64,000 bases of DNA from Utricularia gibba. Taxonomy: Eukaryota; Plantae; Magnoliophyta. The stretch covers positions 1,915,592 through 1,979,591 of the forward strand of contig NEEC01000020.1 in the NCBI GenBank assembly GCA_002189035.1. The letters run 5' to 3'. Of the stretch, positions 12,236 through 48,960 are shown one piece after another. A model generated the notes under the pieces. The model saw only the letters and a list, made by a program, of their open reading frames with translations, was not told where the DNA came from and made no database searches. Positions within the stretch are counted from its first letter, which is position 1; each line of letters begins with the position of its first letter. Position numbers and translations under genes: made by a program.

Positions 12236-12361
12236 TGTTGAAATTCAGGATCCAATGGGTCAGGTGAGCGTACACGTGAAGCCCAAGTATACAAGAAACA
12301 TGGATACTTGGGCTTCACGTGTACGCTCGCCTGACCCATCGGATCCTGAATTTCAACATGG
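12233..12361. repeat. Near-perfect fold-back hairpin with 58-bp arms, 2 mismatches and a 13-nt loop
   Basis: ccatgttgaaattcaggatccaatgggtcaggtgagcgtacacgtgaagcccaagtat-acaagaaacatgg-atacttgggcttcacgtgtacgctcgcctgacccatcggatcctgaatttcaacatgg. Confidence 0.95.
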
Positions 12362-13556: not shown

Positions 13557-14084
13557 ATATTCTTTAAATAACTTTTCTTAATCAAAAAATCACTTATAGC
13601 ACAGCGCGTAGGGGAATGATATTCTAATACCGCTCTAAGCATATCTGATCTACAACAGCCGTAAGTAACCATTGTAGGTTACCAAATAGTGAGTCATTTC
13701 TTGGTTGTCCCTACCACCCCTTATTAGATAGGCCCTCCTCAAAATACACCTTGTCAGGGAGTGTTGCTCCTCTGTTCATCCTTATCGGAGAGAGTGGAAC
13801 GCGGCAGGGATTAAAGACCACATATCCTTCTCCGTAACACCAAGTTATAAGAAGAAAATTGGCATGGGAAATTGTAGGGGTGTAAATGTTGCATTTTGAA
13901 AGGAAAAAATAAGATATTTATAGGGGTGTGGTCCACTTATTTATCAAATTCCCTCGAGTTCCTGTTCCTTCACCGTTGTCTTAGTTTCACATGCTTTTGA
14001 TTGTTTTTCTTCTCATAGTTCAATTGTCTTTTGGAATTGAATGATGCTTGCGGTTATTAGTTTTGAAATAAAAGGCACAAGTAT

Positions 14085-24120: not shown

Positions 24121-27100
24121 TGATGAGCCCCATGAAGATAATGCAGCATATTTAAAGAACGATGAGAAATTTGATCAACTAAACACATTAGAGATAAAGA
24201 TTATTCTTCTATGACCAATTATAAGAAGTAAGAACAAGATGGTTGAAGCTAAACTCAACGGTCTATTCAACACTATTGGAATCACAATTGGGACTAAAGT
24301 ATTACCATTAAGGAGTTCAACTATTGGAGTATCAATTTAACTTAAAGTCCAAAACATCACCCCATCTTTCATGGGTGTTATTGGATTTGTAGACTTTCAT
24401 TTCTTATTTAGTTTGGGCTTTGAAATGTTGGACCCAATTATAGAGTATAAATACTCTAGAGATGTACTCTTTGAGAACCTTTTAGTTCATTTTGATGTAT
24501 CTTGTGAGGATTTTCCTCTTCTTTGAGTGGTTAAACACTTTTGACTTATCAAGCTTTGAATTTGTAGTAACCTAGAATTATCACTTCCATTTTCTTGTCC
24601 TTCTGAAATATAGCTCCTTAAGTCCTTTTCTTTCAAAGTCTGGTTGCAAGAGATTCGTTCTATTGAGAGTAGACTTAAGTGAGTTCTTTTCTAAGCTTCA
24701 AAATCACTTATTATTTGTGGGTTGCTAATTTTTTTAGATTAGAGAGTCACATCATTTGGTAACAGAGCGTTGAGTTCTTTCTCTTTATTAGAATCCTGTT
24801 CTTGTGTTAGATCATCCATTCCTGCTCATTGAAAAAAAAATGTTCAAGCTACATTCTTCTTAGTACTTTTGTCTTTGGCACAAAAAAAAAAAAAAAAAAC
24901 TTCGGTGGAGGGGAAGTTTATTCTGAAAGACCTCGAAATCCACTTTGAATTGAGTAGGAGGAACATCATCAAGATCAAATTCAAGTGTGAGAAAGAGAAG
25001 GAGGTTGAAGCTGAACACCCATCAATTGTCAATGAATTATTGTCCACTCTTCTACTTCACCCATTACAACAAGTAATATATTTCTTATTCTCTTTTATTT
25101 GAATAACCCATTCCCTGTCATTTACTTGTCCCTATCATCTAATTGGACTTCTGCCTTTGTTTATTGCCCATTCCCTTTTTTCTACAATCTCACAAGTAAC
25201 ATACCTCGGGTTTAGTGCCCTTTCACCTGCTTTTTTTATTCTCATTGGTTTATTGTCCATTGTTTTTGTTTATGTACTGCAACAAGCAACAAACTTACAT
25301 CCATCACACTTCGTGTCTCTATCTTTTGACAATTAACACTGCCACACTCAAATTATGCTGTAATTTGGTGGGATCAATTGGTGAGTAAACGAAGGATTGA
25401 TTATGAGGAACCAATTCATACTTGGGATGAGATGAAAAGAGTCATGAGTGTTGATGAATGAAAGATAGAGTCTTGGGAAGTTACAAAAAGGTAATGCTTA
25501 TGGGATTACCGTTGATGAAAAACAACTCATTAACAATAAGAATGACCGAAAACCTAATTGACACGCATTCCTAGTAGGGTTTATATATACCCAATACCTA
25601 AGTTACCCAATAGTGAGCCACAATCATTGAAACCCCTATCCTTGGGGTTTATCAACTAACTCCCATATTTCATTTTCAAGTATAGAATTCATTTCTTCCT
25701 TCATGGGCTCTCTCCATTTCGGATTTTGTACAACCACTTCAAATGATGTTGGATCTCCTGTCAATAATCCAGCCAAAATATCAGCTACAGCATCTTGGAC
25801 ATCATCATTCAACTTGGAGAAACTTATTGTAGGATCCTTATTTCTTTTGCTTCTTCTAATGTCCGTAACATGACTATCTTCATTATCTATTGAATCTTTG
25901 ATATTTTTGCGTTTCCTCCTTTGCCAATCACGATCAGATGGGTAATAATCTTCATCATCAGTATCAGGTTCCTCTCCATCAGATTCATCTGTTGATGAGT
26001 CTTCTGCATTCGTGCCTTGCTCCTCTTCTGGGATTTTGAAATTACCATCTGAATGCAGATAATTGGTCTGATGAGATTATTCATATAGGGGTTCTGAGTT
26101 TGATTCTGAATTCTCATTGGATGAGTTATCTTGATTTGTGACTTTCTCCTCCTCTGGAGGTGAGAAATTCTCATTTGAAAATGCTGATCATTTAATTGAT
26201 TTGAATCTTCATGTACGAGTCCTAAAGTTTCTGGGTTTGTTGAATTCCTGGAAGAGAAGTTTTGAGGTATGTGTGTCCTGAGGTCTCGTTTCACATGGGT
26301 GCTATGCCTTCCACGACTTTTATGAGCTTCTGCATCATTAAGAGAAATGCAATCATCAATTAAAGTATACCTTGCACCTTTATCAAAAGTGACATCATGC
26401 TATTGCAGAATTCACCTCCATTGTGTGATCTAATCATTTTCAACGAGCATCCACTCTGATTCTCAATCATCACTTTGAATTTTCGAAAGATATGAGGATC
26501 TTCTGACTTGCTTTTAAGAAAGTAAACCCAACAATAACGTGAATAATCATCAATGAATGTAACAAAATATCTAATCCCCCTAATGAACATTCCTTAAATG
26601 GTCCACAAACATCTGTATGCACAAGCTCTAATTTCTCCTTTGCTATTGAATCACTGGAATAAAAGGGATTTCTACACTGTTTACCTTGATGGCACACTTC
26701 ACATATGGTATCGGCAAACTTGATGTCTTTCAATTCCAGTACTTCCTTATTCTTTTGCAATATTTTCAGATTGTTGAAGTTATAGTGCCCAAAACGTTTG
26801 TGCCAAAGGCTACTTTGATCCTGAAGTGAGAGAATACAACTTTTACAATCACTGACCATGATTTCGTAAAGGTTGTAGGTGGTCAACACACCATGAAATT
26901 CAATCTTTGTTTTTGGATCAACAACCTTAACTTTAGTGTTTATACCACCCGCATCCTTCATCAGCTTAATATCAAAACCTTGCCTGCTCAATTGGCCAAA
27001 GCTCAACAGGTTTTGTTTGAGGTTTGGTGAATAATAAACATTATCAACTTGCACAATTCCTTCTTTTAGCAAGAGTAAAATGCTTCCAACAATGAGAAGG

Positions 27101-27300
27101 CGATTTGTTCGAAACCATTACCAAAGAAATGTTTATCAACGGTAGCAGAATCTCAAGCCCGCTCAAGGTCAGTGTAGGAATATTGGAAGGAAATGGAGAT
27201 CTTGATGAATAGAGCCAATGTTCATGAAGATAGGCAAGCAACTATGACTAAGTTACTTCATGGGATGAATAAAGAGATTGCAAATATTGTGGAGCTTCAG
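24121..27300 (+). mobile_element. CRM-type gypsy: 5' LTR 24121-24755, PBS, UTR and a deleted gag, interrupted by a copia derivative
   Basis: LTR TGATG...CACATCA followed by tttggtaacagagc (Met-PBS-like). Gag WWDQL...TWDEMKRVM|RRRFVRNHYQR is split by the insertion at 25449-27091. Confidence 0.85.
25449..27091 (-). mobile_element. Multiply deleted copia derivative (copy C) with intact TSD
   Basis: Starts TGTTG and ends TCCAACA, flanked by ATGAG at 25444-25448 and 27092-27096. The interior is a patchwork of LTR, RT-start, linker and integrase pieces of the same family as copies A and B. Confidence 0.85.
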
Positions 27301-29379
27301 AAGATTGCCCATCCTTCTCTCACTTTCATTGTTATTATCTGTGGCATACATGATCTCATCACATCATAAGGCTGATTTGCTCAATCCATTTTATGATTTA
27401 AACATCTCCTTCGATGCCTTTCAAAGTAGTGGAGCATCAATAAACTAATTACTTTTTTGGGACAAGGTGTTGTGAATACAAAGGGTTCATAATCACGACA
27501 GCTTTTCTAGTACAGGCATTGCCAATCTGGAACCGCCATTGCCATGGCCCATATCCATGGTAAAAAAAAGCCCACATCTTTACTGCAAGTCTGAGTCAAC
27601 ACCAGGACGTAAAGCCCCTTGACACTAATAACCCTTATGAAGACAAGGACAAGAATTTTTGTTGAAATACTACACCATAGCTCCTGTAGTATGCATGAGA
27701 TGCAGCACCCGGTCTAATTACAATGGAAATCATACTATATCTAAAGATTTTACAGCGGTCAAAATGCCCTTTAAAATAAAAGAGAATATCAGGAGAACCA
27801 TTTCAGAATGAGAAGTAATTTCGAGTGATGATCTTTAGACATCACAAGTTCAAGAACTTGATAAGTCATATGTATTCAATCACTTAAAAAAGAGTAAGTG
27901 CTTCACAAGATGCATAAAACAAGCAAAAATCCCCCAAAGAGTACATTTGTATAGTATTTATAATATACAATAGAGCCCTAAAATTATTCAATTCAAACAA
28001 AATAAACGAAAAGACCCATGAAGTTCAATAGCGCACATAAAAAATGAAGACATATTTTAGTCTATAAGGCAGACTTGAAGCCCAACTACTAACTCAATAT
28101 TATTGATTAGAAACTTAAGTGTAACTTAAATTCTTGCTTTTACTTCTTATAATTAGTGCAATGTATGTATATTCACTTCTGCAATATCCCCAATATTCTT
28201 CAAATGCTATTCATCATATTACTGGGATTCATCAGAAAACATGGCTTCGCTCACTCTCATGTTGTATCCTCTATGCCATATCTTCTGAAACAATAACAGT
28301 TCAGGTATTCCCAAGTCTTGTTACCACCAATGTTTACTTGGCAACACAGGTCAATATCACTCAATGTTAAGAATGGCATGTGGATTTTCCTATAACCTGC
28401 ACATGCAACACCTCTGTTGCTTGTTTATAGTACATCCCATACTAGTGTTGTCCTTATCCTTAACTACTATCATCGATGGAGCATGAGTTTTTAGTGGCAT
28501 CTGACTTATCCCTAATCTTTCAGGTATGCAAATGGCTTCAGACATGACCAACCACTACATGTACACTCACTATCTGTGGCACGAGTCTGTATTGGGCACC
28601 CTTGAATGAAAACGAAATCATTTTTTGATTGTTGAATCTTTTGACCTTTGTTTACTAGAACAACTTGAAAATATGAGAGGCTCGAATGGTGTACTAACTG
28701 CCTTGCTTGTCCATTATCTTCCTACACTTGGAAAAAATTTTTTGCAGCTCCCAAGCCATTGATAGCGTGAAGTTGCTCGTGCAAATCGTGGTGAAAGATT
28801 CAACAGACGTGGAATGGCTATTTCACCAATAAATGATGGAACTAACGTATATCATACATAAATAATCATTGACAGGGTTTATCAAATCATAGTCAATATA
28901 TAATCGAAAGAAGCTGAGAATACAACCAAGAATATTGTGCACGTTAGAAGAGAGATTCACGCACCCAGGGATTAGGGGTATGTTATCAAGGGCTAAGCCA
29001 AGTTCCTACTTTAAATGATCATGGTCTGGATAAATTGGCACTAGGGAAAGGAACAACACCAGCATGGGGTTTGTTAAAAACAACCAATAGTAGACTTGCA
29101 AGTGTTGCATAAAAGAATACCCACATAGTATTCTTACAATAAGGGTGATGCTGACTCAAATTACTCCATATATACTAGTAAAGAAATTATTTTAGTAAAC
29201 AGAAGGGGCTAATTTCAGGGAAGGGGAAGAGGAGGAATCAACAGAAGAACAAGGGATTCTGTGAGATTTAGTTGTAAGAAGGATTTACTTCTCTGAAGAA
29301 TGAGACAACTGGGATAAATGCTATTGTCAATTATCAGAAACATATTTTTTCATGTTTCTGTGAAACAATATTTGATTAT

Positions 29380-30220
29380 GTGCTTATGTGATTAATTGTT
29401 GTTTTAGTTGAAAATACATCATTCTCTTGTGTTCTTTATTGCTCTCAAGTGGCGAACAGGGCATGTTCCTTTGAATCATTCTTTTTTTTTGTTGTTTGGT
29501 TTTGGAAAACCCTTTTAGAGTCCTTAAAACGCTTTGAGGGTTCTTTAACAAGTTCGCTTGAGGTTTTGGAGCCCCTTTTGATTTTTTTGCAAATGCGTTT
29601 TACCCTTTTGAAGTGTAAGGAACATTCATGGTTCCTTCTTTTATGTGCTATGTGAACATATCTTTGAGATTGGTGAGGGGTGGGGATCCACACTCCTAGC
29701 ACCACTAATGAACTTGGATAATACATGATCAACCTTTTAGGACTTGGATGTGATGCCAAAGTCAAAGATTCAAGGAATTTGAGCAAAGATAGACTATGAG
29801 ACTCACAATGTGGTTATGTGCTTGTTCTTGGGATCTTATGCTCAATAACTCTTGTTTTTCTTCATTCATGTTTATGTTTTACGAAATTACTGTTGCATCA
29901 TCCCTCTGTGTTTTAAACTTGTTCCAGGTGTAGAAGGGTGAAGGTCTAGTGAGCAACCAAATTAGGAGTATGACAATCTAGGTCATGCAAGGTCTTGAAG
30001 TAGATGTGGGAATTTTAGCTATGATATGACTTATGTGCTGTGTAGGCTAGAGGAAGCTTCTACGCATGTTGTTATGGCTAGGAGTCCATGTATATGTAAT
30101 TGACCTAATGTTATCTTCGTATGTTATATAAGAGTTAGGTTGCCTTTGCTTCTAATGTTGTTTAGTGTTTGATAATCATGTCTCATGGCTCCAGCACGTG
30201 AGCATGGGTTATGTGAAATC
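29380..30220. mobile_element. Degenerate gypsy (Athila-like) LTR/3' region; mirrored at about 60140-60980, with a related older copy at about 49600-50170
   Basis: Shared blocks ccacactcctagca and gcaaagatagac..tgagactcac between 29690-29810 and 49740-50010. The family assignment is by resemblance only. Confidence 0.45.
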
Positions 30221-30430
30221 AAATAACAAAATTGTTAATTTTCTAATAGAGGAAAAATGATATTAAACACCTACTTTAGTTGACCATGTGATTATCTTAT
30301 TTATTTCTAAATGAGAAATGAATTAAATATAAACCCACACTGCGGATGTGGTTTTTTCATTCTGTCGTGTTATTACACATTTATTACTGAACATAATAAT
30401 GAATAATATATACCAGAAAACCTGATTACA

Positions 30431-30998
30431 TGATGAGATCATAGATGCTATAGATTATCCCAATGAAGATAAAGGACACAAGATCAATAATCCTCCATTG
30501 ATTTCAATTGGGCCAATCACTAGATCTTGAGTAAGAAGGAATCAAGAAGTGCTTAAGAGCTTATGGGCCAATCAACCAAGCTATGAGATGTTGGACATGG
30601 AATTCAACATTCTCAAAGTGCATCAACTTGATGAGAGAAGGCCCATTACTACCAAATACATTATTATTACTACTTTTCCTGTAATAAGGCCCAATCCTTC
30701 ATCTATTTAATAAGATCTTACTCATGTTTTGTACAACTTTTATTGTAATCACTTTTGAGAGCTATTCTCCTTCCTTGAGTTCTTGTAGAACTTAGACTTA
30801 TCAAGCCTTGCTTGTGGTGTCTAGTGCGTGGTTTATCACTCCCAATTACTTCTTTGATTCTGTGAGTGTGGTACCATTTCATAGTTTGGGTTGCAAGGAT
30901 CTTTCAATCCTTGAGGGCCAACTTCTTTTTCTTGAGGGATTGCTTCTTTCAACCAAGATCTGGTTTGCCAATCACTTGTTGATTGGAGGGTCGTATCA
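30431..30998 (+). mobile_element. CRM solo LTR with perfect TSD; mirrored at 59359-59926
   Basis: TGATG...TATCA termini flanked by TTACA on both sides. Confidence 0.92.
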
Positions 30999-31359
30999 TT
31001 ACATCTCTGCGAAGTAGGTTTTGATTTGGCAGGCGATTGCATAAACTGAGATAGCAAACATGTATGATATACAATCATCAACATCAGCCTTCCAGTTAGA
31101 ATAAGCAAGCATCTGTGTCGCGACTCCATTCATCGACCAATTAGAATAAAAGTACTTGTGAGATGTGAATATTCCTTGAGAAAATTGCTAACACCTGAAT
31201 GCCTAAATATTAAGACAAAGTGCATAGTTCATTCATTTCAATCTGAGTCAGAAGCTGAGACTAGAATTCGTCATAAGCTGCATTTTCCTTTCCGCGGAAA
31301 CATATAGACTTCATTTGTAAAGTATGATTTGATATTCCTGACAATATCGATTTGATCAG

Positions 31360-31530
31360 AACAAGCAAACCATGCTCGAAGGGCTTGTTTCAACCCTTAC
31401 AAGGCTTTCATCAACAATGAAAGCTTTGTTGAATATTCAATTCTATCGAAACAAGAAGGATGAGTAATGTAGATAGCATCCTCAGGATTACCGTTGAAGA
31501 AGGCTTGCTTAACATGGAAATGATACCGAA
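31360..31530 (-). mobile_element. Old copia RT fragment; mirrored at about 58830-59000 (+)
   Basis: HVKQAFFNGNPEDAIYITHP...KAL*GLKQALRAWF. Confidence 0.7.
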
Positions 31531-32765
31531 AGCACAGAAAGATACCATAGATGGTCAGAAGAGTCTGAGATAAGTTAACTGCTGCAAAAGGTGTCTAGAT
31601 AATCATACCTTTAACTTGATCATATTCCTTTTCACAACCAATCTGGCATTCCGTTCGTCAAGCCACTCTTCTGAGTTTAATTTAGTTCGGATAACTCATT
31701 TTAGGCGAATGATTCTTCTGTCGATGGATGCATTAACAACCTCCCATCTGCATTTATTTATCGTCACAAGTTCCTTCTCCTTTGCGGCCTTCCAAAAACT
31801 TGAAGAGAATACTTCAGACACAAACTCAGGATCTGCATATTAGTAGTTTAACAGAATGGTTTAAACGGATGTCCAACATCTGTACACAGAACACTACTCT
31901 TCCGTGCATGAAGAAGAGAAAAACCACTTCTCTTATTTTGAATTTACATTAATTATTTAGCTGCTTGACCATTTAGTTGACATTTTATCTTGTTGATTGG
32001 CTGGTTAATGAATGTAAATCATATGCATCATAATTTTGCAATCAAAACTCAATTATGGCGAAAAAGTCTTACTAAATACATTTTTATAATTTTCTGTTAA
32101 TTTATTTGGTAATACTTCCATAATTTGGCATGACTAAATTTGGGAAATATTTGCATGATTTGCTATGACTATTATGGTAACAAACCGCAGCTCGGACTTC
32201 CTCGTGTCCTTTTTCTTCCTATTTTTATATTTTCTCTTACTCGCTAACGGAAGAAAGTGACTTATTAATGCTCCCGTTTTCTTCCTGCTTTATTTCTTGG
32301 GTTTCTGTCATTCGGCTGAGAGGGAAACTGTTGGTTTATTCCATGTTCTGAGCTTGGGCGTTGAATAATGAATAAGATGGGGCGATTGAAGAGCACTGCT
32401 GCTTGGCGTACATGGGACTTACATCCTGTAAGTGTCATGCTGATTTCGTAAAGTTTATTTATTTAAGTTTCTGAGCAATCATGGGTTTTCCATTGCCTGG
32501 TATCACCGAGGATGATGGTAACAATCACTAGTCGTAAGTTGGCAAACTCATTCGGTGGTAAAGACAACCTAGGGGTATTAGGAAAAAAATATTCACAATA
32601 CTTATGATAAAATGACATTTCGTCTCGTGAATAGGATATGCTCAAATTGTGTCGTTACAAGGTAGATTTCCTCTCTGTTCACCTTTCAAACTCCCGGGAA
32701 ATCAGCTGATAAATGCTTCTTTTTCATATGCTACGGAAAGTCATATATGTGAATAACACCATATC

Positions 32766-35207
32766 ATGCAGGTAGCTGCAACACGTGTTCCATATAGAAG
32801 AAGTCTTTTCTCCAAGCTGCTGGGCAGCATCGAATTGGAACTCGCACTGGTAGGATTGGGCGCAGGCCTCATGGTGCTACTGCTATGCGCAATCCTCATT
32901 TTGAAAGTTAGAGCTGCAAAAAAGGAGAAGCATTTGCGCAATGCTCTGATAAGGCAAATGGAAGCTACTCAACAATCCGAAAAGAAGAGCATGAGCAAGA
33001 GCCTTGTCTTTGCTAGAGCAAGCCATGACATGCATGCCGCCTTGGCTGCGTTGAGTGGTATAACAGAACTCTGTCGTCATCAGTTGTACCAGAGTACTTA
33101 TTCCAGGTCAGATACAGACGCGAACCTCAAGTTAATGGAAGCTTGCATAAGTGATCTTTCAGGTTATTTATTCGTCTTCTATCCGTGGTCGATCGCTTTA
33201 TATCAACTCACATTTTCACTTTCAGTGATTGTTGCTCTAAACGCAGGAATTCTGAAATCTGTTCTTGATAGCAGTAGGATCGAGGCTGGGAAAATGCAGC
33301 TAGTGGAGGAGAGATTTTCCTTGGAAGAGCTACTAGAAGACGTTGTTGATTTTTATCACCCCATGGGCATCAAGAAAGGAATTGATGTGATTCTAGATCC
33401 TGGTGATGGTTCTCTTATCAGGCTTTCTCACGTCAAAGGAGATAGACGCAAACTAAAGCAAATCCTAGGCAACTTACTGAGCAACGCTGTTAAATTTACG
33501 TCAGAGGGGCATGTCATTGTTAGAGGATGGGCTAGAAAACCAAGCGCGGACTTTTTGATAAATGCGACAGGTGAACGACAATCATCAAGAAATGAGTCAA
33601 CAGTGGTTCGCAGAAATCCGAATTTGCTGGAGTATTGGTTTGAAGTGAGCGACACAGGTACCGGAATACCCAAGGGGAGAAGACAAATGGTGTTTGAAAA
33701 TTATGTGCAAGTCGAGGGGTCAGCACCCGACCAAGAAGGCACTGGTCTTGGGCTGGGTATCGTGCAGTCCCTGGTATGTTGCATTTAAAACGCTCATTCA
33801 GTTTAGCCACATTGATCCATACCAGGAATTTCTAGTGATGAAAAGGGTCACTAACTCTGTCGCATTTGAATTCAGGTTCGTTTAATGGGAGGAGAAATTG
33901 AGATAGTTGAAAACGAAGGCCAAGGAATTGGTACCTGCATTAGATTTAACGTACTCATGGAGGCAGAAGCATCACACTGCCCAATTGCAACGTTAGACAG
34001 AGGATATAGCTCTTCCCATTTCTGCAGCTGGAGAAGTCTCATTCAAAACTATTACAGCAAAGTAGAAAGATCTGGAGTAATAATCTTCATCCACAACCAA
34101 AAAAGGTGCACGGTCCTGCAAGACTTCATGAGGAGACTCGAAATAAACGTGCAAGTTGCCATAAACTGTAACCACCTCATTGAAATACTGAGAAATATCA
34201 AGCAAGGGATTTCACAATCTAGTATTGGCAGCTCAAGCAACTCAAGGAGAGATGGGATTGCTACCTCATGGCGCAAGTTAGAAGAAACTCCCTTGGCTGC
34301 TGTTGACTGGGCACACACAGATTCTGTTCCTTGGAGGAAGATGAAATTCATTCTGGTTGTCATTGATATACGCGTAGGAGAATTCCATGACATCGACATC
34401 ACCCTAGGTAATTTCAGAAGAGACTTACCTGAATATTGCTGCAGCAGAGTCATCTGGTGTGACATACCAGACATCACTGACAATGACACCCCCTGCATCG
34501 ATGTTAGTAAACTGCCTTCATCTGATTTGGTCATACGCAAACCTCTTCATGGATCCCGATTGTATCAAACAATTGGCCTTTTGCCTGAATTTGGTGGGAT
34601 TCCAACAACAAGGGGTGAAAGTTTGCATGCTGACATATCCTCTCAAACCATATGCATTAAAGAAGTTGGTACACAAGAAGTCGAGGATTCTAATGACATG
34701 AACCCACTGAAGGGGAAGAGAATCCTTGTTGTTGATGACAATGCCGTTGGGAGAATGTTAGCCAAATCAACTGTTGAAACGCTTGGTGGCAGCATAGTCG
34801 TATGTGAAAGTGGGGAAAAGGCTTGCGAACTTGTTTCCATATTGCTCAAAGATGGAAGATGGGATTCTTCGGTCCCTTTCAGCTGTATCCTAATGGACTG
34901 TGAGGTAGGTATATAAAGCACGAAACTATCACTTTTTTTCAAATATTTTCCCTAATGTGCTGACACATCGATGATGATTCAATATCATGAAATGCAGATG
35001 GAAGGAATGGATGGGATTGAAACAACGAAGAAGATAAGAGAATTAGAAGACACCCATGGTGCTCATACACCAATTTGGGCATTGACTGCACATCATCCGG
35101 GGGATGAGATAAACAAAATGATTCAGGCTGGAGCAGATGGGTATATCACCAAACCATTGACAAAGGAAACGCTTCTATCATGCTACCTGAAAAAAAGAAA
35201 CAAGTAA
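32766..35207 (+). CDS. CKI1: CKI1-like hybrid histidine kinase, copy 1 (about 720 aa; single TM + HisKA + HATPase + receiver; no ectodomain seen)
   Basis: Exons 32766-33162, 33247-33773, 33876-34904 and 34998-35207 with GT-AG introns give 2163 nt without a stop. CKI1-diagnostic LIRQMEATQQSEKKSMSKS..FARASHD (His codon 33024-33026); N box NLLSNAVKFT; G1 DTGTGIP; F box VFENYVQV; G2 GTGLGLGIVQSL; KPLHGSRL..LPEFGG; receiver VVDDN, MDCEM (Asp 34896-34898), ALTAH, TKP. The exact start is uncertain. Confidence 0.9.
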
Positions 35208-35419
35208 AATAGGATTGCGTTTTACTGACTAACGTCCCGTGCCATTGAATTTTTTGTTTTGTTACTACATTCATAATCTTGAGGGCTCTAGTGATATCAT
35301 ATTTTGCTACTCTTATTGGCGGAGAATGGCGTTACTTCGACACAGGAAATATCATATATACGTACTTTAGTATCTTTCTAGACATTCCACGTAAATCATA
35401 CTACTTTTTGTAAGGGAAA

Positions 35420-36795
35420 TCCAGCAAGTTTGTGCTAAAGTAAGAAAGGATCCATGAAGCTAGGAAACAAGACATGGGATTGAAGTGGGTGGTCCCACAC
35501 ACGTAATATGAAGTGCTTCAAATGTCTTGGACATGTGCTTCAAGAAGAAGACTATGATTTTAAAAGATTCTGAAGATATTGAATTACCGATTTAGAGCGT
35601 AAGTGCACATGAAGTAAAGAAGACAGATGATGATGTGAACAGAAACCTATCGAAAGCAAATATTTGGTGGCTAGATAGACTATGGTCATGGATATTTAGC
35701 CGATGGAGGAACAAGAGAACGCATTACATGCATGACACTTATCTAATGCTAAGGTTTGCAGCCTCATAATCGATGGAGGTAAATGCACGAATAATGCTAG
35801 TTCTCTCATGGTGGAGAAATCCAACGTCCTATTCTAATGCATCCACATCTATATCAGTTGTAATAGTTGAACGCAAAGAGTGAAGTAAGGTTACTAAACA
35901 AGTTCTTATTACAATCTTCATTGTGAAAATACACGATGAGTTTCTTTATGATGTGGTACCCATGCACGCAGGATAAATTCTATTAGATGTCCTTTGCACT
36001 GTAATAGGAGGATGGCACCTGATAAATATGCCAACAAATACTTCTTCTCCATCAAAGGTAAACGAATCATCCTGGTGCCTTAATCTTCTAGTGGGGCACA
36101 TGAATATCAATGGAAGATTAATGCTGCTATGAAATCTTTAATTGAGTTGAAAGATGAGAGTATAAGAGAAATGAAAGAGAAAATCGAGAGAAAAGGACAT
36201 CAATAAAAGAGAGTGAAAAGAAGGAGGTGTGATGAGATCATGGATGCTACAGATTATTCCAATGAAGATAAAACACACAAGTTCTATAATTCTCCATTGA
36301 TTTCAATTAGGCCAATCACTAGATTAAGAGCAAGAAAGAATCAAGAGATGTTTAAGGGCCTATGGGCCAATCAACAAAGCTATGAGGTGTTCAGAGAATT
36401 CAACCTTCTCAAAGTGAATCAACTTGATTACAGAAGGTCCATTACTCCCAAATATATTATTATTACTACTTTTCTTCTAAGAAGGCCCAATCATTTATCT
36501 ATATAAGAAGGAATTTACTCTTGTTTTAGACAACTTTGATTGTAATCTTTTTTGAGAGCAATGCTTCTTCTTTGAGTTCTTGTACAACATAGACTTATCA
36601 AACCTTGCTTGTGGTGTGTAGTGTGTGGTTTATCACTCCAAATTCTTTAATTGATTCTGTGAATGTGGTTGCATTTCATAGTTTAGGTTGCAAGGATCTT
36701 TAAATCCTTGAGAGCCAACTTCTTTTCTTTGAGAGATTGCTTCTTTTCAACCAATATCTGGTTTGCCAATTACTTCTTGATTGAAGGCCGTATCA
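35420..36795 (+). mobile_element. Deleted CRM element: zinc knuckle/protease relic plus 3' LTR 36230-36795; mirrored at about 53563-54940
   Basis: CFKCLGH, VCSLIIDGG; purine-rich tract preceding TGATG...TATCA. Confidence 0.75.
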
Positions 36796-36959
36796 AGATG
36801 AATAAGGAAATAGTGAGAAAAAAAGAAATATAATGTCTCATTGTAAGGATGAGTAATGTGAAACATATATTGCACTTGTATAACAATAAGAAACATAGGG
36901 GCAGAAATCCATTTCTCTTGCCCTTATTGAAAGAGCCTGTGTTACATACTCTAACTCAC

Positions 36960-38050
36960 AAAAGGATATTCCTACTTGTATGATACTTGTATGTATGGGT
37001 TCATTGATGTCATCCTAAATCGGTTCCAGGATTTCAACCACACAAAGGAATAGAACATTGAATTGACTTTGTTCCAGGTTCTCAACTCCCTAGTGGATGA
37101 ACTTGTGGCAAAAGGCTTGGTGAGGGAAAGTGATAGCCCATACTGCATTCCAATTTTATTGGTGTCTAAACATGAGGGAACAAAGAAAATGTTCACAGAT
37201 TGCTGGGCGATTCACCAAAGAACGGTTACGTACAACTATCATATGTCTAGGCTTAATGACATGGTAGATTAATTTTACGGATAATGTATTTCATGTAAAA
37301 TAAATTGATGTTGTTGATATTATTAAACTTGGATGAGGAGGGGGGATGAATGCAAGAATGCTTTCGAAGTTGATGTTGGTTATGCTTTTTAAATTGACTA
37401 ATGCATCTAATACTTTAATTATATTAATGAATCATGTACTACACCGTCTTCTTGGTAAATTTGCTGCTGTTTTCTTCGATGATATTCTCTAGCATGCAAT
37501 TAATTCGCATGCTCCAACAGACTTTTTGCCATTTCATCTCATGAAGTTGAATCCATTGATTGTGCTGAGAAAGTAGATGCCATCAGAACACTTCTCAAGA
37601 GATTCGAAACCATCATGAAGTTAAAAAATAGGGTAATTAGCAAACACGAAGAAACATTGATCAGCATGCAGATTGGATTTGGGTACCTTTGCAAAAGCGT
37701 AGATTTACATCCAAGAGATATTCAAAATTAGCACCTAGAGGAATTGGACCATTTCAAGTCAGTGAGAAAATCGATGATAATACATTCAAAATTGACCTAA
37801 TAGTGGAGGTTTATGTACATTCTATATTCAATATTGCTCAATTGATTCCTTGTGATGTAGATGCTGATCTTCATGAATAAATCTGCTAAAGGGCAGTGGA
37901 GATGATAAGATCATGGATACTAGTGATGAAAACAATGAAAATGAACGAAAGAAGGATCCTCCAATGATTTTGCTTGGACCAATCATTTGATAAAGATCAC
38001 TAGAAAATCCAGAGTTTCTGAAAAGATTACTAGTCAATGATGTCTAAGGT
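36960..38050 (+). mobile_element. Highly deleted CRM RT/integrase relic and LTR stub; mirrored at about 52310-53400
   Basis: LVRESDSPYCIPILLVSK...MFTDCWAI...MSRLNDMVD; KLAPRGIGPFQV. Confidence 0.75.
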
Positions 38051-39296
38051 TCAACCTATTTGAGTCAAGGTTGCTCATTACTCCCTAGTGAACAAAATGC
38101 AACTTTTATTTTGAGCAAGCACACATCTCACCCAATATAAGAATGGTCTTACTTTTGTATGATTGTCGACTTCAAGCTAGATCTACCTTAACCCCCATAA
38201 TCAATTAAAATCTGAAAGTGATTAGTTGTTTTGATGTCATGAGATCAAGCATAAAGATGTAAAAGAGTGCATCAAGAACTTCAAGCTTGAGGATTGACGC
38301 GTAAAAATCGTGTATTTTTCTTTCTTCTTTAAATTTCTTTTCTTTACTTCCTTGTTGCCTGTTTCTTTTACCTCTTTTTTAGGATGTCAAATTATAAAAG
38401 TGAATACCAGAAAGATGACTCATTGGATGAGAAGTTCGCTTTGAATTCTTTGCAACAAGGATTTTAAAAATTGTATCTTTTTTCTCTTCAAAATATTGGA
38501 ATAACCTAAGGTGTACAAAATAATCATACTTCTTGAAGGCCTCGTTGTGTGCGAATGCCTCAACGCAACAACACTGAACTTGAAGGCATCAGTGATCAAT
38601 GGAGTGAAAAGAGCGTTGTAAAAAGAGATAGAATCTAAATTGAATGACAGCTTCAAGAATAACAAGTATCTTGTTATTCAAAGTATCTTGTTCGTATGAT
38701 TAACAAGTATTCAATGACAGCTTCAAGAATAAGCATTCTTTCACTTATAGTGCACACTTGATGAGATAAGCTCCTGAGTCTCTATGGGAGGCACATACGA
38801 TGCAAGTGAGAATCTTAAGTGATGCTAGAGCACTATATGGAGCGAATGGGAATTGTGAAGACGAGGTTCTTAATATAGCAGAGATGGGTGGCGAAAAGGA
38901 ACCAAAAAAAAAAACGGTGCAAAAGAAATTTATTTAGGAAGAACTCGATATTTACTCTCAATTGAGTATCAATAATATTAAGATGAAGTGTGTGAAAAAC
39001 GAGGGTGCTGGTAATCTACAATTTGTCAGTATGATTACATTATAAAATTTCATTTGTTTCTTGCTCATTTCTCTACGTTAGCCACTCCTACAAGTAATCT
39101 ATTTACTTGTCACAATCATCTTTGATAAATCTTAAGCAAGATGATGAAAGATGATGATGGGCATTTAAAGATGTTGTATATGTGGCACAAATGGAAAATA
39201 TGAATAAATGTTAAGAATCTATTGAACCATATTACGTTAGAAGTTTGGCTTAAAATGTTGGAACCAAAGGCGCTCAACAACATCCAAAAGAGTATA

Positions 39297-39865
39297 TGAT
39301 AAGATCATGGATGCTATAAATTATGACAATGAAAATAAAGGAGATAAGATCAATAATCCTCTATTGATTTCAGTTGGACCAATCACTAGATCAAGAGCAA
39401 GAAGGAAACAAGAAGTGCTTAAGAGCTTATGGGCCAATCAATCAAGCTATGAGGTGTTGTGCATGAAATTCAACATTCTCAAAGTGAATCAACTTGATTA
39501 GAGAAGGCCCATTACTACCAAATACATTATTATTACTACTTTTCCTCTAATAAGGCCCAATTCTTCATTTATTTAAGAAGACCTTACTCATGTTTTGGAC
39601 AACTTTGATTATAATAACTTTTGAGAGCTATTCTCCTTCCTTGAATTCTTGTAGAACTTAGACTTATCAAGCCTCGCTTGTGGTGTATAGTGTGTGGTTT
39701 ATCACTTCCAATTCCTTCCTTGATTCTGTGAGTGTGGTACCATTTCATAGTTTGGGTTGCAAGGATCTTTCAATCCTTGAGGGCCAACTTCTTTTTCTCG
39801 AGGGATTGCTTCTTTTCAACCAAGATCTGATTTGCCAATCACTTGTTGATTGGAGGGTCGTATCA
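39297..39865 (+). mobile_element. CRM solo LTR; mirrored at 50493-51061
   Basis: TGATA...TATCA, flanked by GTATA/GTATG (TSD with one mismatch); GPITRSRARR motif. Confidence 0.88.
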
Positions 39866-40299
39866 GTATGAAATATCAATTATATGAAATAATTTAAAAG
39901 ATCATCAAAAAGTACATCTTGAGATTATTTATAATTTAGAATTGGGTTCTAACATTTCAAGACCCAAACTAAATAAAAAAAACTGACAAGTAAAATAACA
40001 CACATGAAAGATGAAAAGACATATTGGCCTCTAAGGTAGATTCAACATCAAGTAGTTGAACCCCATTAATGGTAAAAGTTCAAGCGCATGGTTTATAACA
40101 ATAATGTTGAGTAGAGTGTTCAGTGTAGCTTCAACTATCTTGCTCCTACTCCTTGTCATTAGTTATGATGGAATGATATTACTATCCAAATTGTCCACTT
40201 GTACACCATATGTTGATCAAATCTTCTAGTGATGATTCCATTCCAAATATGTTGATCAAATCTTCTTAATACTATTTTGTTATTCAGGAAGACGTAACT

Positions 40300-41000
40300 A
40301 TTTTTTTGAGATATTTCCATGCCCAAAAACTAACTGGCCAGTCCAAGATCTGTGAGATCATAGCACGGCCAATGCTCTTCAATTAATTGAGAGCAAAAAA
40401 TAGGTCATCAACGTATGAACGCAATAATTTATCCCTTAGGTTCTTCTTCAAGTAGCGGGTAGTATTATTTTGACTTCTCTGAAATCCATGCTCAATGAAG
40501 TAAGTGTGCCATTATTTTGCTGCTGGCTTTAGACCATATATGTCTTCCTTCAAGCCTCCATTTAATAACGAACTCTTCATATCAAGGTGATGTAACTTCC
40601 AGTTGTTGCATGCTGCATAGGCAATTAGCAGCTTCATTGTATCTAGATGACCCATTGGTGCAAAGCTTTCGAGATAATCCATTCCAGCCTTATCTGATTT
40701 TTCTTTTATTTCATTCTTCTCATCCACTTCAGGCTATGAGGTTTAACAGTATTTGGAGCATCACCACTTCTGAGCCTCCATGCTCACTTCCGAAATTCCG
40801 TGATGATATACACTCCTGTTTCGTTATTTTGGATTGCTCCAATCATGCCCATCTTCACACTCAGTGCACTCCTCAAAGTTTCTGAGGGAGTACTGGAAGC
40901 GTTGATCGAGTCTGGATTAGGAAATAGGCTCGATAAGGAGGCTGGTGATTGAAGTTCGCCATTGAAAGGGGTAAGGTTCCAGTGCCAACTTTTTTATTCA
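40300..41000 (-). mobile_element. Degenerate copia RT fragment
   Basis: GMDYLESFAPMGHLDTMKLLIAYAACNNWKLHHLDMKS. Confidence 0.7.
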
Positions 41001-41185
41001 TCAACAATGATGTCACAGCCTATTTCTACTCTATTGGCTTTCATGTTTAGTTCACCATTGAAATGACTAAGAAAAAACTGACATTCGCACTCTAGTCTAA
41101 CTTACTGCGTTTTTCTTTTGGCACATATATATATCACAGAGTGTCAGGACCCATGCCCAGGGCCCAAGAGGCATGAGGCATGACT

Positions 41186-43420
41186 GTCAAGTCCTTATGA
41201 CATGATACCTGATTCTTATGTGTTTGACTTTGCTGAAATTTGTTGGAACCTTGGCAATAGAGATTGAAGCTCGATTATCCATAAGCAGATATGTAGCTTC
41301 CTTCTGAACGAATCGAAGTTCGTTTAACATTTTTCTCAACCAAACGCAATAGCTCAAAGCATGTGCTACTGAGATGTATTCTGCTTCAAGTGTTAATTGC
41401 GCTACCATCTTTTGTTTCTTTGAAAACTAGACTACAGGGCTCTTACTTAAGAAGAAGAGTGCACTAGATGTACTATTGCTATCTTCAGCCATATCATAAT
41501 CCCTATCTAAGTACGCTCTAAGTTTAAAGACTTATTTTTCCCCTTCATAGGAATAGAACAATCCAAAATCAGTAGTGCATTTTATGTACCTGAAAGCTCT
41601 TTTTACAGCTGGCATGTGAGTTGTTATTGGTTTATTCAGGAAGCGAGATCAGACATTTACACAAAAACACAGGTCATGCCTTGTATGCTGGAGATACATG
41701 AGGGTTCCAATCATACTTTTATAAGTAGTAGCATCCACATTCCTTTCCTGATTATCTTCTCCAATCACCTGTTTGTAATCCAAATGAGTTTTTGAAGGAT
41801 TAACATCTTTAAACTCAAACCTTTCAAAAAGTTCATTACAGTACTTCTTTTGAAATATTAATGTTCCAACACCTGCAAGTTGATGAATTTCCATGTCTAA
41901 ATAATAGGAAATCATTTCAAGGTCAGTTATCTTGAATTCAATTTTAAGTAGAGTTTTGAATTTTTTAATCTTACTTTCATCACCTAAGGTAATCATAAGA
42001 TTATGAACATATAAGCTAACAAATAACCGATCATCTCCCTTTCCTTTAAGATATAGTGAGTGATCGCAATATGTCTTTATGAAACCAATACCCTAGAGAA
42101 AGTTATTCATGCTATAGGAGCATGCTTCAACCCATAGAGAGATTTTTTTAGCTTCAATACTTTGTATTCATGACCAAAAACTTCAAAGCCCTTTGGATGT
42201 TCAACAAGAACAACCTCCTCCAAAACACCATTCAAAAACGAAGTTTTCACATTCATGTGATGCACTTTCCATCCATGAGTAGCTGAAATAGCAAGAAGTA
42301 CTTTAATCATGTCAAATCCTTCTACTGGTGCAAAAATCTCATGAAAGTTTCTTATTTTGATTTGACTATATCCCTTGGCTACTAATCTACACTTATATTT
42401 GCTAACAGAACCATCTGCGTTGATTTTGCTTTTGAAAACTTTATCCTTAGATTTGTAAACTAACTCCCAGGTTTCATTTTCAAGTATAGAATTCATTTCT
42501 TCCACCATGGAAACACTCTATTTCGGATTTTATACTACCACATCAAATGATGCTGGATCTATTGTCAATAGTCCAGCCAGAATATCAGCTACGGTATCTT
42601 TAAAATCATCATTCAACTTGGAAAAACTTATTTTAGGAGTCTTGTTTCTTTTGCTTCGTCTTATGTCAATAACCTTATCACCTCCATAATCGATTGATTG
42701 TCTAATGCTTTTGCATTTCTTTCCTTGCCAATCACGACCAGATGGGTAATAATCCTCATCATCAGTATCAGGTTCCAAAACTTGAAGATGATTGAAAGCA
42801 CTAATCTTGTGTCATAATGTCATATTTCAGATAAAAAAGTGTTGGGTTCGAACATGGAAATGTTGGATTCGAGTTATTGGGCTTTTTTGTATGTTTTCAA
42901 TAATTGTGGCCAACTGTTGGGTAACCTAGATATTAGGTATATATAAACCCTACTAGAAATGCGTGTCAATTAGGTTTTCGGTCATTCTTATTGTTCATGA
43001 GTTGTTTCTTTATTAAGGGTGATTTCATAAGCATTACCTTTTATTACTTCCCAAAACTCTATCTTTCATTCATCAGCATCCATCAAATTCATTTGTTAAT
43101 AAATTTTCTGCAATTATACCTTGCTCCCCTTTTGGGAGTTCGAAATTTCCATCTGAATATTGATCATTGGCCGGATGTGATTGTTCACATAAGGGTTCTG
43201 AGATTGATTCTGAATTCTCAATGGATGAGTCATCTTTATTTGGGCATTCTCCTCTTCTGGAAGTGGGAAATTCCCATCCGAACACCGATCATTTACTTGA
43301 TTCACTGAAGAGTTCTTAAAATAATTTTGAGTTCTTATTCACTTGTATTTGTTCACTTCCATCTTCAATTTTTGATTTATTCAATTTCTGGAAGAGATGT
43401 TTTGAGGCATGTGTGTCCAT
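41186..43420 (-). mobile_element. Copia copy D (RNase H-RT-linker, degenerate) with an oppositely oriented family LTR piece at about 42780-43050
   Basis: ORFs 41187-41408, 41649-41996 and 42107-42508 parallel copy B. The segment 42780-43050 is the reverse complement of the 15134-15456 LTR. Confidence 0.85.
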
Positions 43421-43423
43421 AGT

Positions 43424-46400
43424 TAATGAGCCCCAGGAAGATAATGAAATGTATTTGAAGAATGATGAAAAGTTTGTCCAAGGGAACACATTAGAAACAA
43501 AGATGATTCCACCAGGACCAATGACTAGGAGCAAGACAAAGATGGTTGAATATACACTTAAGCGTCTACTCAATACCATTGGAATCAAACATGGGCTTGA
43601 AGACATCCCATCAAAAGAGTTCAACTACTTGAAAGTGGATTTATCTTAGAGCATTGGACTTTTTAGACTTTTTTATTTCATTTAATTTGGGCCAAATAAT
43701 GTTAGAGCCCAATCCTGCAGTATAAATACTCTAGAGTTGTACTATTTCAGGATCTTTAATCATTTTCATGGATGTTGTGAGTATTCTCCTTTTTTTTGAG
43801 TGCTTGAACACTCTTAACTTATCAAGCTTTGAGCTTGTGGCGTTCTAGGATGATGAGCCCCAGGAAGATAAATGAAGTGTATTTAAAGAATGATGAGGAG
43901 TTTGTTCAAGTGAACAAATTAGAAAGAAAGATGATTCCACCAGGACCAATGACTAGGAGCAAGACAAAGATGGTTGAAGATACACTTAAGGGTCTACTCA
44001 ATACCATTGGAATCAAACATGGGCTTGAAGACATCCCATCAAAAGAGCTCAACTACTTGAAGATGGACTTAACTTAGAACATTGGGCTTGTTAGACTTTT
44101 CTATTTCATTTAGTTTGGACTATGTAATGTTAGAGCCCAATTCTAGAGTATAAATACTCTAGAGATGTACTAATTCAGGATCTTTGGTCATTTTATGTAT
44201 CTTGTGAGGATTCCCCTCTCCTTTGAGTGCTTGAACACTCTTAACTTATCAAGCTTTGAGCTTGTGGCGTTCTAGGATTATCACTTCCAATCAATCTCTC
44301 TTTTCTGAAGTGTGGCTCCTAATTTTCTTTGTTTCGAAGTCTGGTTGCAAGAGATTTATTCTCTTGAGGGTAGACTTGGGTGGGTTCTCTTCTAAGCTTC
44401 AAAATCACCTCTTTTTTGTGGGTTGCTAATCTCTATAGATTAGAGGGTCACATCATAGTATTATCACTTTCAATACCTCTCTTTCCTGAAGAGTGCCTCC
44501 TAATTTTCTTTGTTTCGAAGTCTGGTTGCAAGAGATTCATTTTTTTGAGGTTAGACTTGGGTGGATTCTCTTTTAAGCTTCAAAATCACCTCTTGTTCAT
44601 GGATTGCTAATCTCTATACATTAGAGGGTCACATCATTTAGTATCACAGCTTTGGGTTCCTTCTTCATAATATTATCCTGTTCTTGAAAAAAAAAAAAAA
44701 ACGTTCAAGCCACATCCTTCTTCGTAATTTTGGCTTTGACAAAAAAAAAAAAAAAAAAGGGTTCACAGGAAGTTGATTGAGGAAGAGCTCGAAATTGAGT
44801 GTCAATTGAATAGCAAAAACACCTGGAAAATATCAACTTCAAGGGTGTTAAAAGAGAAGGAGAGTGGAGGTGAATACCCATCACCAATCACTATCATCCA
44901 TTATTTTATATGTTTCCTTATGACCCACGTCTCTAGTTTTCCCATATCACCAAGCAACCACTTTATTGTTGTTTTCCTTATCTTGATCCCCATTCCTTGT
45001 CACTTACTTGTCCGTACAATTCCAGTTCGCTATTCTCTTTGTTAATTGCCCATTCCTATGTTTCTGCAATTTCACAAGAATTATATTTAGTATGTAGTGC
45101 TCATTCCTCTGTTTTCATCTTATCTTACCTTGTGTCCATCCCTCCTATTTATCTACTGCAACAAACAACCAACATAATTCAACCAATCCCGCCTTTTTTG
45201 TCTCTATTTTGAGACAATTAACACTGCCAATCTCACCTAACCCCATCATAACACCATAATCAATTATAATCTGGAAGTGATTAATTTTTGAGGTGTCACG
45301 AGGTCAAGCATGATAATGTTATGGAGTGCATCAAATTCTCTTTTCTTTCTTGAGACAATTAAGACTTGAAGCTTGGGGATTGATTGATAAACCTTGTGTG
45401 TGCTTCTTTGCTCTTTCACTTTATTCTCTTTTTTTTCTCTTGCTGCTCGTTTTCTTTTGTCTTCTATTTAGAATGTCAAATTCAAGAAGTGAGCATGAAA
45501 AGGATGATTTACCGGATGAAAAGTTCACTTTCAGAGCTGTGCAACAATTATTTGAAAAATTGCATCGTATTTTGGAAAATATAAATGTCAGGCTTGATGA
45601 ACACGAAAATTCTCTACAAAATGTTGCAAGAGCCGAAAGACAAGATAATTATGCTGCTGGGAGGGGTGGAGGCATTCAAATGCATCAACGCATCAACACT
45701 GAACATGACTTAAGTGATCAATGAAGTGCGAGGACTGTTGGAAGAAGAAATCGAATCCTGAATACTGATGAAGAAGATGACTACCTTGAATATGGTGAAA
45801 ATGATTTTCTTCATGGTGATACAAGAAGATTTCGAGATCAGGGAGGCAGGAGAAACAGAGGAAGAATTGGAAAGGATGCTAACAACATCAAGATGAAGAT
45901 ACCTCAATTTCAAGGAAACAATGATGCAGATGCATATCTCCAATGGGAAACAAGAGTAGAACATGTGTTTGATTGTAACAACTTCTCTAAAGAAAAGAAA
46001 GTATGATTAGCTTGCATGGAATTCAGTGATTATGCGGTAATTTGGTGGGATCAATTGGTTGCTAAAAGAAGGATTGACTCTGAAGAACCAACTCATACTT
46101 GGGCTGAGATGAAAAGAGTCATGAGGAGGCGATTTGTTCCAAACCATTACCAAAAAGATGTTTATCAGCGTTTGCAGAATCTCAAGTAGGGCTTAAGGTC
46201 AGTGTATGAATATTGGCAGGAAATGGAGATCTTGATAAATAGAACCAATCTTCATGAAGATAGGAAAGCAACTATGGCAAGGTTCCTTCATGGGATGAAT
46301 AAGGAGATTGCAAATATGGTAGAGCTTTATCACTACATTGAGATGGAGGACATGATTCATATGGCCACGAAACTTGAGAAACAACTCTCTAATAAGAGCT

Positions 46401-48478: not shown

Positions 48479-48639
48479 CTAGACTTATCAAGCCTTGCTT
48501 GTGATTCCATTTCATAATTAGGGTTGTAAGGATCTTTCAATCCTTAAGTGACAACTTTTTCCTCCCTGAGGAATTGCACCTTTTAAACCAAGTTATGCTT
48601 TTCCATTAGTTTGTTAATTGGAGGATCGTATCATGTACT

Positions 48640-48960
48640 CTCTTAAATGTAAATCATAAGTGGTCACACATTTTATGCTGTTCAAGTCAATGAGTGTGAT
48701 TCACAGCCAACAGAAAATTCTTGCCATCAGATCCTAAAATAATGGAGAATATACCCACCTTGAACTCAAATACGTTAGTCAAGAAAGTGAATTTGTTCAC
48801 CAGTTCACGGCACCATGAACTCAACAGCAAAATGGTATCTGTAAAAGGAAAAACAAGTCCGTCATGGTGCATTGTTGTGCATTGTTTACTGCTCGAAAAG
48901 AAGATGCCTAGGTATAAATCCTGAACAGACTACCCACAAAAGAGACCAAAGGAAGCAAGA
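48640..48960 (+). mobile_element. Degenerate copia integrase fragment
   Basis: RS*NNGEY...HQFTAP*TQQQNGICKRKN. Confidence 0.6.

Follow-up and report, generated by a model that had tools for sequence, protein, structure and literature searches.

A CKI1-clade histidine kinase gene lacking recognizable ectodomain exons in a palindromic region of the Utricularia gibba genome

Introduction

Central-cell (endosperm-precursor) identity is under a master switch, the hybrid histidine kinase CKI1, for whose ectodomain we know of no ligand. In Arabidopsis it feeds the phosphorelay of AHP proteins and type-B ARRs without needing cytokinin, and central-cell fate depends on it. A 64,000-nt stretch of Utricularia gibba DNA from contig NEEC01000020.1 (hereafter the window, within which all coordinates are given unless another sequence is named) carries at 32766-35207 a CKI1-like gene whose predicted product has a kinase, a receiver and one membrane helix, and nothing recognizable of the outer domain. 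CKI1 proteins characteristically have two N-terminal membrane helices around an extracytoplasmic domain of ~300 aa (PMC7402358). The locus thus raises the question of whether a plant has kept a CKI1 stripped of its sensing domain, or whether the gene is a fragment of a larger one. Our literature search found no paper on Utricularia and CKI1, and none describing an ectodomain-less CKI1.

Gene Structure and Breakpoint

Three plus-strand open reading frames (ORFs) that share one frame are listed at 32766-33788, 33885-34916 and 34971-35207, and removal of three canonical GT-AG introns, which measure 84, 102 and 93 nt, leaves a coding sequence (CDS) of 2163 nt with 720 codons and a stop (exons A to D, Table 1). 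The first of these introns, being in frame and without a stop, is hidden inside a 340-aa ORF. The predicted protein opens with 25 residues, followed by a single hydrophobic helix at residues 26-48 and a basic KVRAAKKEKH segment. Its kinase part carries the H box ASHDMH (residues 85-90, with the phospho-accepting His at position 87), the N box LLSNAVKFT, the G1 box DTGTGI, the F box VFENYVQV and the G2 box GTGLGLGIV, and its receiver carries VVDDN, LMDCE, LTAH and TKP. Pfam recognizes HATPase_c at 56.4 bits (cut-off 26.4) and Response_reg at 52.8 bits, while HisKA reaches just 13.8 bits on the exon-A piece, under its cut-off. The first half of the receiver alone has the receiver domain of Arabidopsis CKI1 as its best solved-structure match (AtCKI1 RD, 3mm4, E 3.8e-8). 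An original prediction, made from the DNA letters alone, of a single transmembrane segment after ~25 residues, intact kinase and receiver boxes and ~720 open codons is borne out by the spliced CDS, the Pfam matches and the motifs.

The 5′ boundary can be placed by comparison with a CKI1-like gene of Primulina that has seven exons, the first three of which encode the first transmembrane helix (TM1) and the ectodomain. Exon 4 of the Primulina gene opens 22 residues before the second transmembrane helix (TM2), at a phase-0 acceptor reading CAG/GTT, with Val as its first residue and Leu-Pro further on. The window reads ATG CAG/GTA GCT ... GTT CCA, with the same acceptor, phase, first Val and Pro seven residues on as in Primulina, and this layout (CAG/GT., Val, Pro at +7) is also found in Genlisea and Cornus. 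Given the shared layout, the apparent start ATG stands within the 6 nt that close ancestral intron 3. Judged by exon structure, the window gene is ancestral exons 4-7 of a seven-exon CKI1 with its introns retained, and the alignment shows ancestral intron 3 to be broken immediately before the exon-4 acceptor, which gives the window copy a precise breakpoint at the intron-3/exon-4 acceptor. The intron loss of a processed (retro-)pseudogene is not seen, all three introns standing at ancestral positions.

Placement within the CKI1 Clade

An HD motif at the phospho-accepting His marks the CKI1 clade, whereas AHK1 and the cytokinin receptors have HE (bioRxiv 10.1101/2023.09.10.556599), and the H box of the window protein (ASHDMH) is of the HD type. 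Its best matches in a search of 1.84 billion representatives are plant CKI1-type kinases at no more than 59% identity, and together with word searches it turned up no protein of more than 61% identity, nor any entry marked as encoded by the window; these protein searches were queried with ORF pieces or with relatives. The matches come from Primulina, Penstemon, Rehmannia, Striga and others, with source names of the form 'histidine kinase CKI1(-like)'. Full-length relatives are mostly 1000-1150 aa long and have two membrane helices ~300 residues apart, the second of which (TM2) aligns with the single helix of the window protein.

In trees built on the shared region only, the window protein falls within Lamiales CKI1 with Genlisea aurea as its sister (SH-like approximate likelihood-ratio test, SH-aLRT, 99), on an end branch of 0.95-1.04 against a median of 0.12-0.28. 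The pairing with Genlisea carries some risk, as both sisters are long branches. Two 1122-aa representatives considered as an Arabidopsis CKI1 anchor for the tree were rejected, since they match 3mm4 at only ~100 bits. Taken on these sequence comparisons, the window gene is a CKI1-clade gene of Lamiales, and the CKI1 identity first proposed for it stands on the database matches, the likeness of the receiver and the phylogeny with CKI1-annotated proteins.

Search for the Missing Ectodomain

None of 36 N-terminal probes from full-length relatives (0/36) matched an ectodomain in the 64-kb window (tblastn, E ≤ 1e-2), while each of the 36 picked up the ectodomain exon of Primulina in a positive control of equal search space, at E values from 1e-7 to 1e-87. 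A profile hidden Markov model of the ectodomain run over all six-frame peptides of the window gave noise only, and so did a Genlisea exon-3/exon-2 ectodomain probe against the window. The tblastn search with the 36 N-termini, repeated at E up to 20, likewise yielded nothing beyond noise. A match at 25157-25336 ('AHSLF..ISQVTYLG') considered as an ectodomain exon was rejected (E = 2.2; low-complexity, AT-rich and with no exon signals), and a TM1-like match at 31981-32097 (E = 1.9) was inspected and likewise rejected. Directly upstream of the gene the frames are closed, with a frame-0 stop (TAA) 12 nt before the ATG and stops in the other two frames within ~100 nt, in agreement with the ~200 nt given in the original prediction. 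At the DNA level the window copy has neither TM1 nor the ~300-aa ectodomain across 32.7 kb or more; the probe search and its positive control support this loss, which had first been proposed from the short N-terminus.

The same prediction had named a lineage whose orthologues normally lack the ectodomain as an observation that would undermine it. Genlisea aurea (KE527792.1) has its ectodomain exons intact at L002:3862-4119 and 4205-4810, ~100 bp upstream of its kinase exons, and the loss is therefore not a trait of the family Lentibulariaceae but specific to the window copy or its lineage. The Genlisea gene is probably full length, as judged from its exons. The deposited 'partial' model M569_02940 starts inside TM2, and ectodomain exons 2 and 3 of Genlisea lie unannotated just upstream.

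Genomic Setting

In Genlisea a BRWD/bromodomain gene at L002:7643-11204 lies tail to tail with CKI1, 205 bp after it, and since a BRWD neighbor is also found in Eucalyptus and Syzygium, the adjacency is old. When the Genlisea flanks were used as tblastx queries, neither the BRWD gene nor the upstream PPR gene of Genlisea had a match in the window, while the same flanks gave strong matches at the Eucalyptus and Syzygium loci. With no syntenic neighbors, CKI1 homology is confined to ~2.45 kb with foreign DNA on either side, and the 1.78-kb stretch upstream of the gene has only two short, weak matches to the Genlisea upstream sequence, both on the opposite strand. The window copy is thus shown to be non-syntenic and to lie between old gypsy and copia relics, both kinds of which occur in the wider region of the window.

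The nearest recognizable repeat ends at 30990, or 1.78 kb upstream of the gene, rather than ~900 bp upstream, where the original prediction had relics of transposable elements (TEs) begin. It is one of four copies of a ~570-bp repeat resembling a long terminal repeat (LTR), which are 9-18% diverged from one another and have no clean pairing (Table 1). The copies do not lend themselves to dating by LTR divergence, as the closest pair, B-D, is not the two LTRs of one element. Immediately before the copy at 19699-20266 comes a Ty3/gypsy integrase SH3 domain (19139-19705), and a second such domain, at 37689-37877, precedes the fourth LTR-like copy by 1.4 kb.

These surroundings bear on the very improbable explanation that the gene is a passenger fragment captured by a transposon, in the manner of a Pack-MULE, a Helitron or hAT-type transduplication. 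Retained introns, a CKI1 homology of only ~2.45 kb and foreign flanks would all fit such a capture, but neither terminal inverted repeats nor other element ends were found on its two sides. A search for inverted repeats of at least 18 nt bracketing the gene found none in 29.5-37.5 kb, only the direct, old LTR-like pair, although diverged termini would escape such a search, and the LTR-like repeats on either side, far from being a matched pair, are old insertions of separate origin. Transposon-captured fragments are, moreover, usually shorter and scrambled, which also counts against capture.

The palindrome in which the gene lies has arms of at least 13.8 kb, this figure being a lower bound because the left arm ends at the mirror of the window's right edge and the true arms may be longer. 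Comparison of the arms shows that the kinase gene was recently doubled within this inverted duplication, and the palindrome here therefore carries a gene. Substitutions between the arms cluster in the innermost ~300 bp; outside it, most differences are small indels, which in the main lengthen or shorten a homopolymer. The two copies of the gene are set apart at only two sites, a G-run in exon C and a T-run in the last intron, both of them homopolymer-length differences. The mirror copy has GG in exon C (~56472; 56470-56474) against GGG at 33885-33887, and its frame shifts in the G2 box, where LMGGEIEI becomes LMEEKLR followed by a stop. As the differences between the arms outside the innermost ~300 bp are mainly of homopolymer length, this frameshift may be a sequencing or assembly error; the alternative is a real lesion.

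It is improbable, in our estimate, that the gene is really full length, with exons 1-3 lying upstream beyond an intron 3 swollen by TEs to over 32.7 kb, or cut off from exon 4 by misassembly of a stretch that is palindromic and rich in repeats. Such a gene would explain why homology breaks exactly in an intron, where TE insertion is tolerated; the homopolymer-length discrepancies between the arms of the assembly and the fact that the left arm reaches a limit set by the window edge also speak for it. However, intron 3 would have to exceed 32 kb and take in a tyrosine-decarboxylase-like gene on the other strand, where intron 3 of relatives measures ~90-150 nt, and the downstream BRWD neighbor is missing as well, which a bloated intron does not explain. 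The exons of that pyridoxal-dependent (tyrosine/aromatic amino acid) decarboxylase lie at 3860-6255 on the minus strand, with a Pfam Pyridoxal_deC match of 82 bits on one of them.

Table 1. Features of the kinase gene and of the surrounding palindrome and repeats, in window coordinates.
Feature	Position	Strand	Remarks
Exon A (ancestral exon 4)	32766-33162	+	ATG 32766-32768; acceptor AG 32770-32771; ancestral exon start 32772 (GTA = Val); begins with 25-residue N-tail
TM2 (exon A)	32841-32909	+	
H box (exon A)	33018-33059	+	His87
First intron	33163-33246	+	84 nt, GT-AG, in frame, stop-free
Exon B (ancestral exon 5)	33247-33773	+	Remainder of dimerization/phosphotransfer (DHp) domain and ATP-binding domain
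N box (exon B)	33474-33500	+	
G1 box (exon B)	33651-33668	+	
F box (exon B)	33690-33713	+	
G2 box (exon B)	beginning 33738	+	
Exon C (ancestral exon 6)	33876-34904	+	G2 box end (LMGGEIEI), poorly conserved linker, receiver first half
Receiver DD (exon C)	34728-34742	+	
Receiver phospho-Asp (exon C)	from 34890	+	In LMDCE
Exon D (ancestral exon 7)	34998-35207	+	Receiver second half, TAA stop
Receiver T (exon D)	35079-35093	+	
Receiver K (exon D)	35145-35159	+	
Palindrome left arm	26350-40173		Inverted repeat
Palindrome spacer	40174-50185		10 kb
Palindrome right arm	50186-64000		99.85% identical to left arm over 13.8 kb
Mirror copy of whole kinase gene	57592-55151	-	Exons A, B and D letter-identical
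LTR-like repeat, Ty3/gypsy family	30424-30990	+	1.78 kb upstream of gene
Same LTR-like repeat	36223-36787	+	1.0 kb downstream of stop codon
Further copy of LTR-like repeat (~570 bp)	19699-20266		Direct orientation
Further copy of LTR-like repeat (~570 bp)	39290-39856		Direct orientation

Short CKI1 Forms in Other Plants

Many CKI1 models in the databases have only one helix before the kinase, and six of these (Genlisea, Phlomoides, Cornus, Ziziphus, Eucalyptus and Syzygium) were checked at the DNA level. Besides the Genlisea gene described above, that of Phlomoides rotata proved to be one gene whose model had been split, its ectodomain exons lying ~3 kb upstream (L005:5998-9995 and 10001-13882), and the ~3-kb gap is probably an insertion in intron 3. 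The Phlomoides ectodomain part (287 aa) and kinase part (676 aa) are annotated as two genes. No ectodomain exon was found within 10 kb of the genes of Cornus florida (730 aa) and Ziziphus jujuba (XP_048332298.2, 771 aa), which also have no BRWD neighbor, or within 10 kb of those of Eucalyptus grandis (752 aa) and Syzygium oleosum (757 aa). In the latter two genera the short CKI1 occupies the syntenic BRWD locus, and the sequence upstream of it is conserved between them. In the Cornus gene the annotated start is not in the reading frame of the first ~20 codons.

The short forms are scattered in the tree, each beside a long form of its own order, with the exception of an all-short Myrtales clade that comprises four Myrtaceae genera and Melastoma; in this sample Myrtales have short forms only. 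Branches of the short forms are of ordinary length, and the end branches of Cornus and Ziziphus are as short as those of their full-length kin. The sensor-less architecture is, on this evidence from gene structure and phylogeny, not unique to the window copy. A series of CKI1-like models of 746-912 aa (tags 12G0517-0525; P0219, P0221, P0225, P0244, P0302) was also observed on one contig of Erythranthe guttata chromosome 12, four of which, of 746-774 aa, retain no more of the ectodomain than its final third. In another assembly a neighboring tag belongs to a full-length Erythranthe copy (1065 aa).

Young Duplicate or Maintained Kinase

The explanation that we favor, tentatively and with somewhat less than even confidence, is that the window gene is a 5′-truncated, DNA-level copy of the CKI1 of its lineage, a young partial duplicate with an undecayed frame. 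By inference, a recent truncation or duplication, at less than ~1% neutral divergence, would account for the still perfect frame, and the start codon would be an ATG that happens to stand among the final 6 nt of an old intron. In a simulation with indels at one tenth of the substitution rate, a neutral frame of 720 codons stayed open with P ~0.28 at 0.5% divergence, ~0.08 at 1% and <0.01 at 2%, and on these figures the open frame points either to a young truncation or to selection on the truncated frame. The argument that the gene must be kept under selection because its frame is open, as the original prediction had it, therefore does not follow from the open frame alone, since a neutral frame survives to ~1% divergence.

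Several features of the copy favor the young duplicate, the low HisKA score of 13.8 bits among them. Compared with 45 relatives, the window protein is altered at 18 of 155 near-invariant columns (11.6%), against 8.6% for Genlisea and 1-5% for most others. The Arg three residues after the phospho-accepting His, present in ~96% of 186 relatives, is His in the window protein, and after the phospho-Asp the Pro of the receiver Met-Pro (~95% of relatives) is Glu. The 500 nt before the start hold 15 ATGs, two upstream ORFs (uORFs; from 32713 and from 32728) overlap the start, and no TATA motif was found within 1 kb upstream. The uORFs and the missing TATA motif count weakly against efficient translation from 32766, unless transcription were to start very close by or a new 5′ exon to be spliced on. 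Contigs from four small sequencing runs bearing the same species label aligned only to the LTR-like repeat, at 30430-30998 with 90-95% identity, and are uninformative on expression of the kinase.

A second explanation, possible but on balance unlikely, is that the gene is a functional, selectively maintained sensor-less CKI1 that would have acquired a new promoter or 5′ exon, would use the former TM2 as its anchor, and would either signal constitutively or modulate full-length CKI1 by forming heterodimers with it. A number of observations favor such a kinase and weigh against a young, idle duplicate. The 720-codon frame is intact, all six splice sites are canonical, and the strictly catalytic residues are all preserved. 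A three-way codon comparison of the window gene, Genlisea and Primulina, in which dS is near saturation and the values are accordingly rough, assigned to the window-copy branch a nonsynonymous rate (dN) of 0.243 and a synonymous rate (dS) of 1.05, or dN/dS ~0.23, and to the Genlisea branch dN 0.124 and dS 0.44, or dN/dS ~0.28. The branch-wide ratio of the window copy is thus low and not near 1, and the two sets of values indicate a fast lineage rather than relaxed selection, with no long neutral phase. The frame is also open among TE copies that are 9-18% diverged, and if the fragment is as old as these LTR-like copies, neutrality is excluded. As read from gene models and the tree, ectodomain-less CKI1 is a form that arose several times and can persist: independent cases with normal branch lengths are found in Cornus, Ziziphus, Eucalyptus and Syzygium, and the Myrtaceae short forms are syntenic with conserved upstream sequence. 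Lastly, the window ATG has an A at position -3. Against maintenance stand an ATG that is an intron remnant behind overlapping uORFs, a non-syntenic site in a nest of TEs, a frameshifted mirror copy, and unusual replacements of the Arg at H+3 and of Pro in the receiver.

Taking both sides together, an idle or weakly expressed fragment appears more likely than a maintained regulator. Of the earlier interpretation, the CKI1-clade assignment and the ectodomain loss hold, and the low branch-wide dN/dS is in its favor; selection on the gene as a truncated variant goes beyond what an open frame can support. If the young duplicate is transcribed and its ATG is used for translation, its product would be a hybrid histidine kinase anchored in the membrane, in which a short tail faces outward, the kinase is cytosolic and a sensing domain is absent. 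It would be expected to dimerize through its DHp helices and to autophosphorylate at His87, from which phosphate would pass to the receiver Asp in LMDCE and on to AHP proteins, and it could act alone or as a heterodimer with full-length CKI1.

A broader interpretation, in our view doubtful, is that the window copy is an expressed and working CKI1 without its sensing domain; alongside the short CKI1 found across Myrtales at the syntenic locus and the independently truncated paralogues of Cornus and Ziziphus, it would then show that flowering plants shed the ectodomain several times and kept the rest. Were it true, the CKI1 ectodomain would be dispensable for core signaling, and a naturally sensor-less CKI1 under selection would be a ready-made test of whether the outer domain matters. 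The window alone cannot show a maintained sensor-less CKI1, since the copy may be a young fragment.

Comparison with Known Systems

Arabidopsis CKI1 (AT2G47430), Primulina tabacum XP_075489711.1 and Genlisea M569_02940 have in common with the window copy the HD-type H box, the N, G1, F and G2 boxes and a C-terminal receiver, and Arabidopsis CKI1, its orthologues and the window copy alike have no CHASE domain. Exon-intron positions of exons 4-7 are the same in the window copy as in CKI1 orthologues. Exons 1-3 of the orthologues, which encode TM1 and the ~300-aa extracytoplasmic domain, and a BRWD neighbor are both missing from the window copy, which also differs in having His for Arg at H+3, Met-Glu for Met-Pro in the receiver and a very long end branch.

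A bacterial counterpart is the cytoplasmic fragment of EnvZ, a sensor kinase without its periplasmic domain, in which the kinase core can still dimerize and autophosphorylate and the output is signal-independent. EnvZ-type fragments are laboratory constructs, whereas the window copy is natural, and because full-length CKI1 is already ligand-independent in assays, the effect of ectodomain loss cannot be predicted from such fragments.

Closer parallels are found among plants. The short CKI1 proteins of Myrtaceae (Eucalyptus, 752 aa; Syzygium, 757 aa; Corymbia, 759 aa; Psidium, 744 aa) consist, as does the window copy, of a few N-terminal residues, one helix, the kinase and the receiver. The Myrtaceae genes are, however, syntenic and conserved across genera and look like the regular gene of their lineage, whereas the window copy is non-syntenic, lineage-specific and set in a TE nest. 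The Cornus and Ziziphus paralogues resemble the window copy in their independent 5′ truncation, in having no BRWD neighbor and in the absence of an ectodomain exon within 10 kb, and homology in Cornus opens at the exon-4 acceptor, as it does in the window copy. Cornus groups with a full-length partner from the same genome and Ziziphus with one from the sister genus Rhamnella, and both, unlike the window copy, have branches of ordinary length. The syntenic Myrtaceae locus and the Cornus and Ziziphus paralogues are thus the cleaner natural cases in which to test the role of the CKI1 ectodomain.

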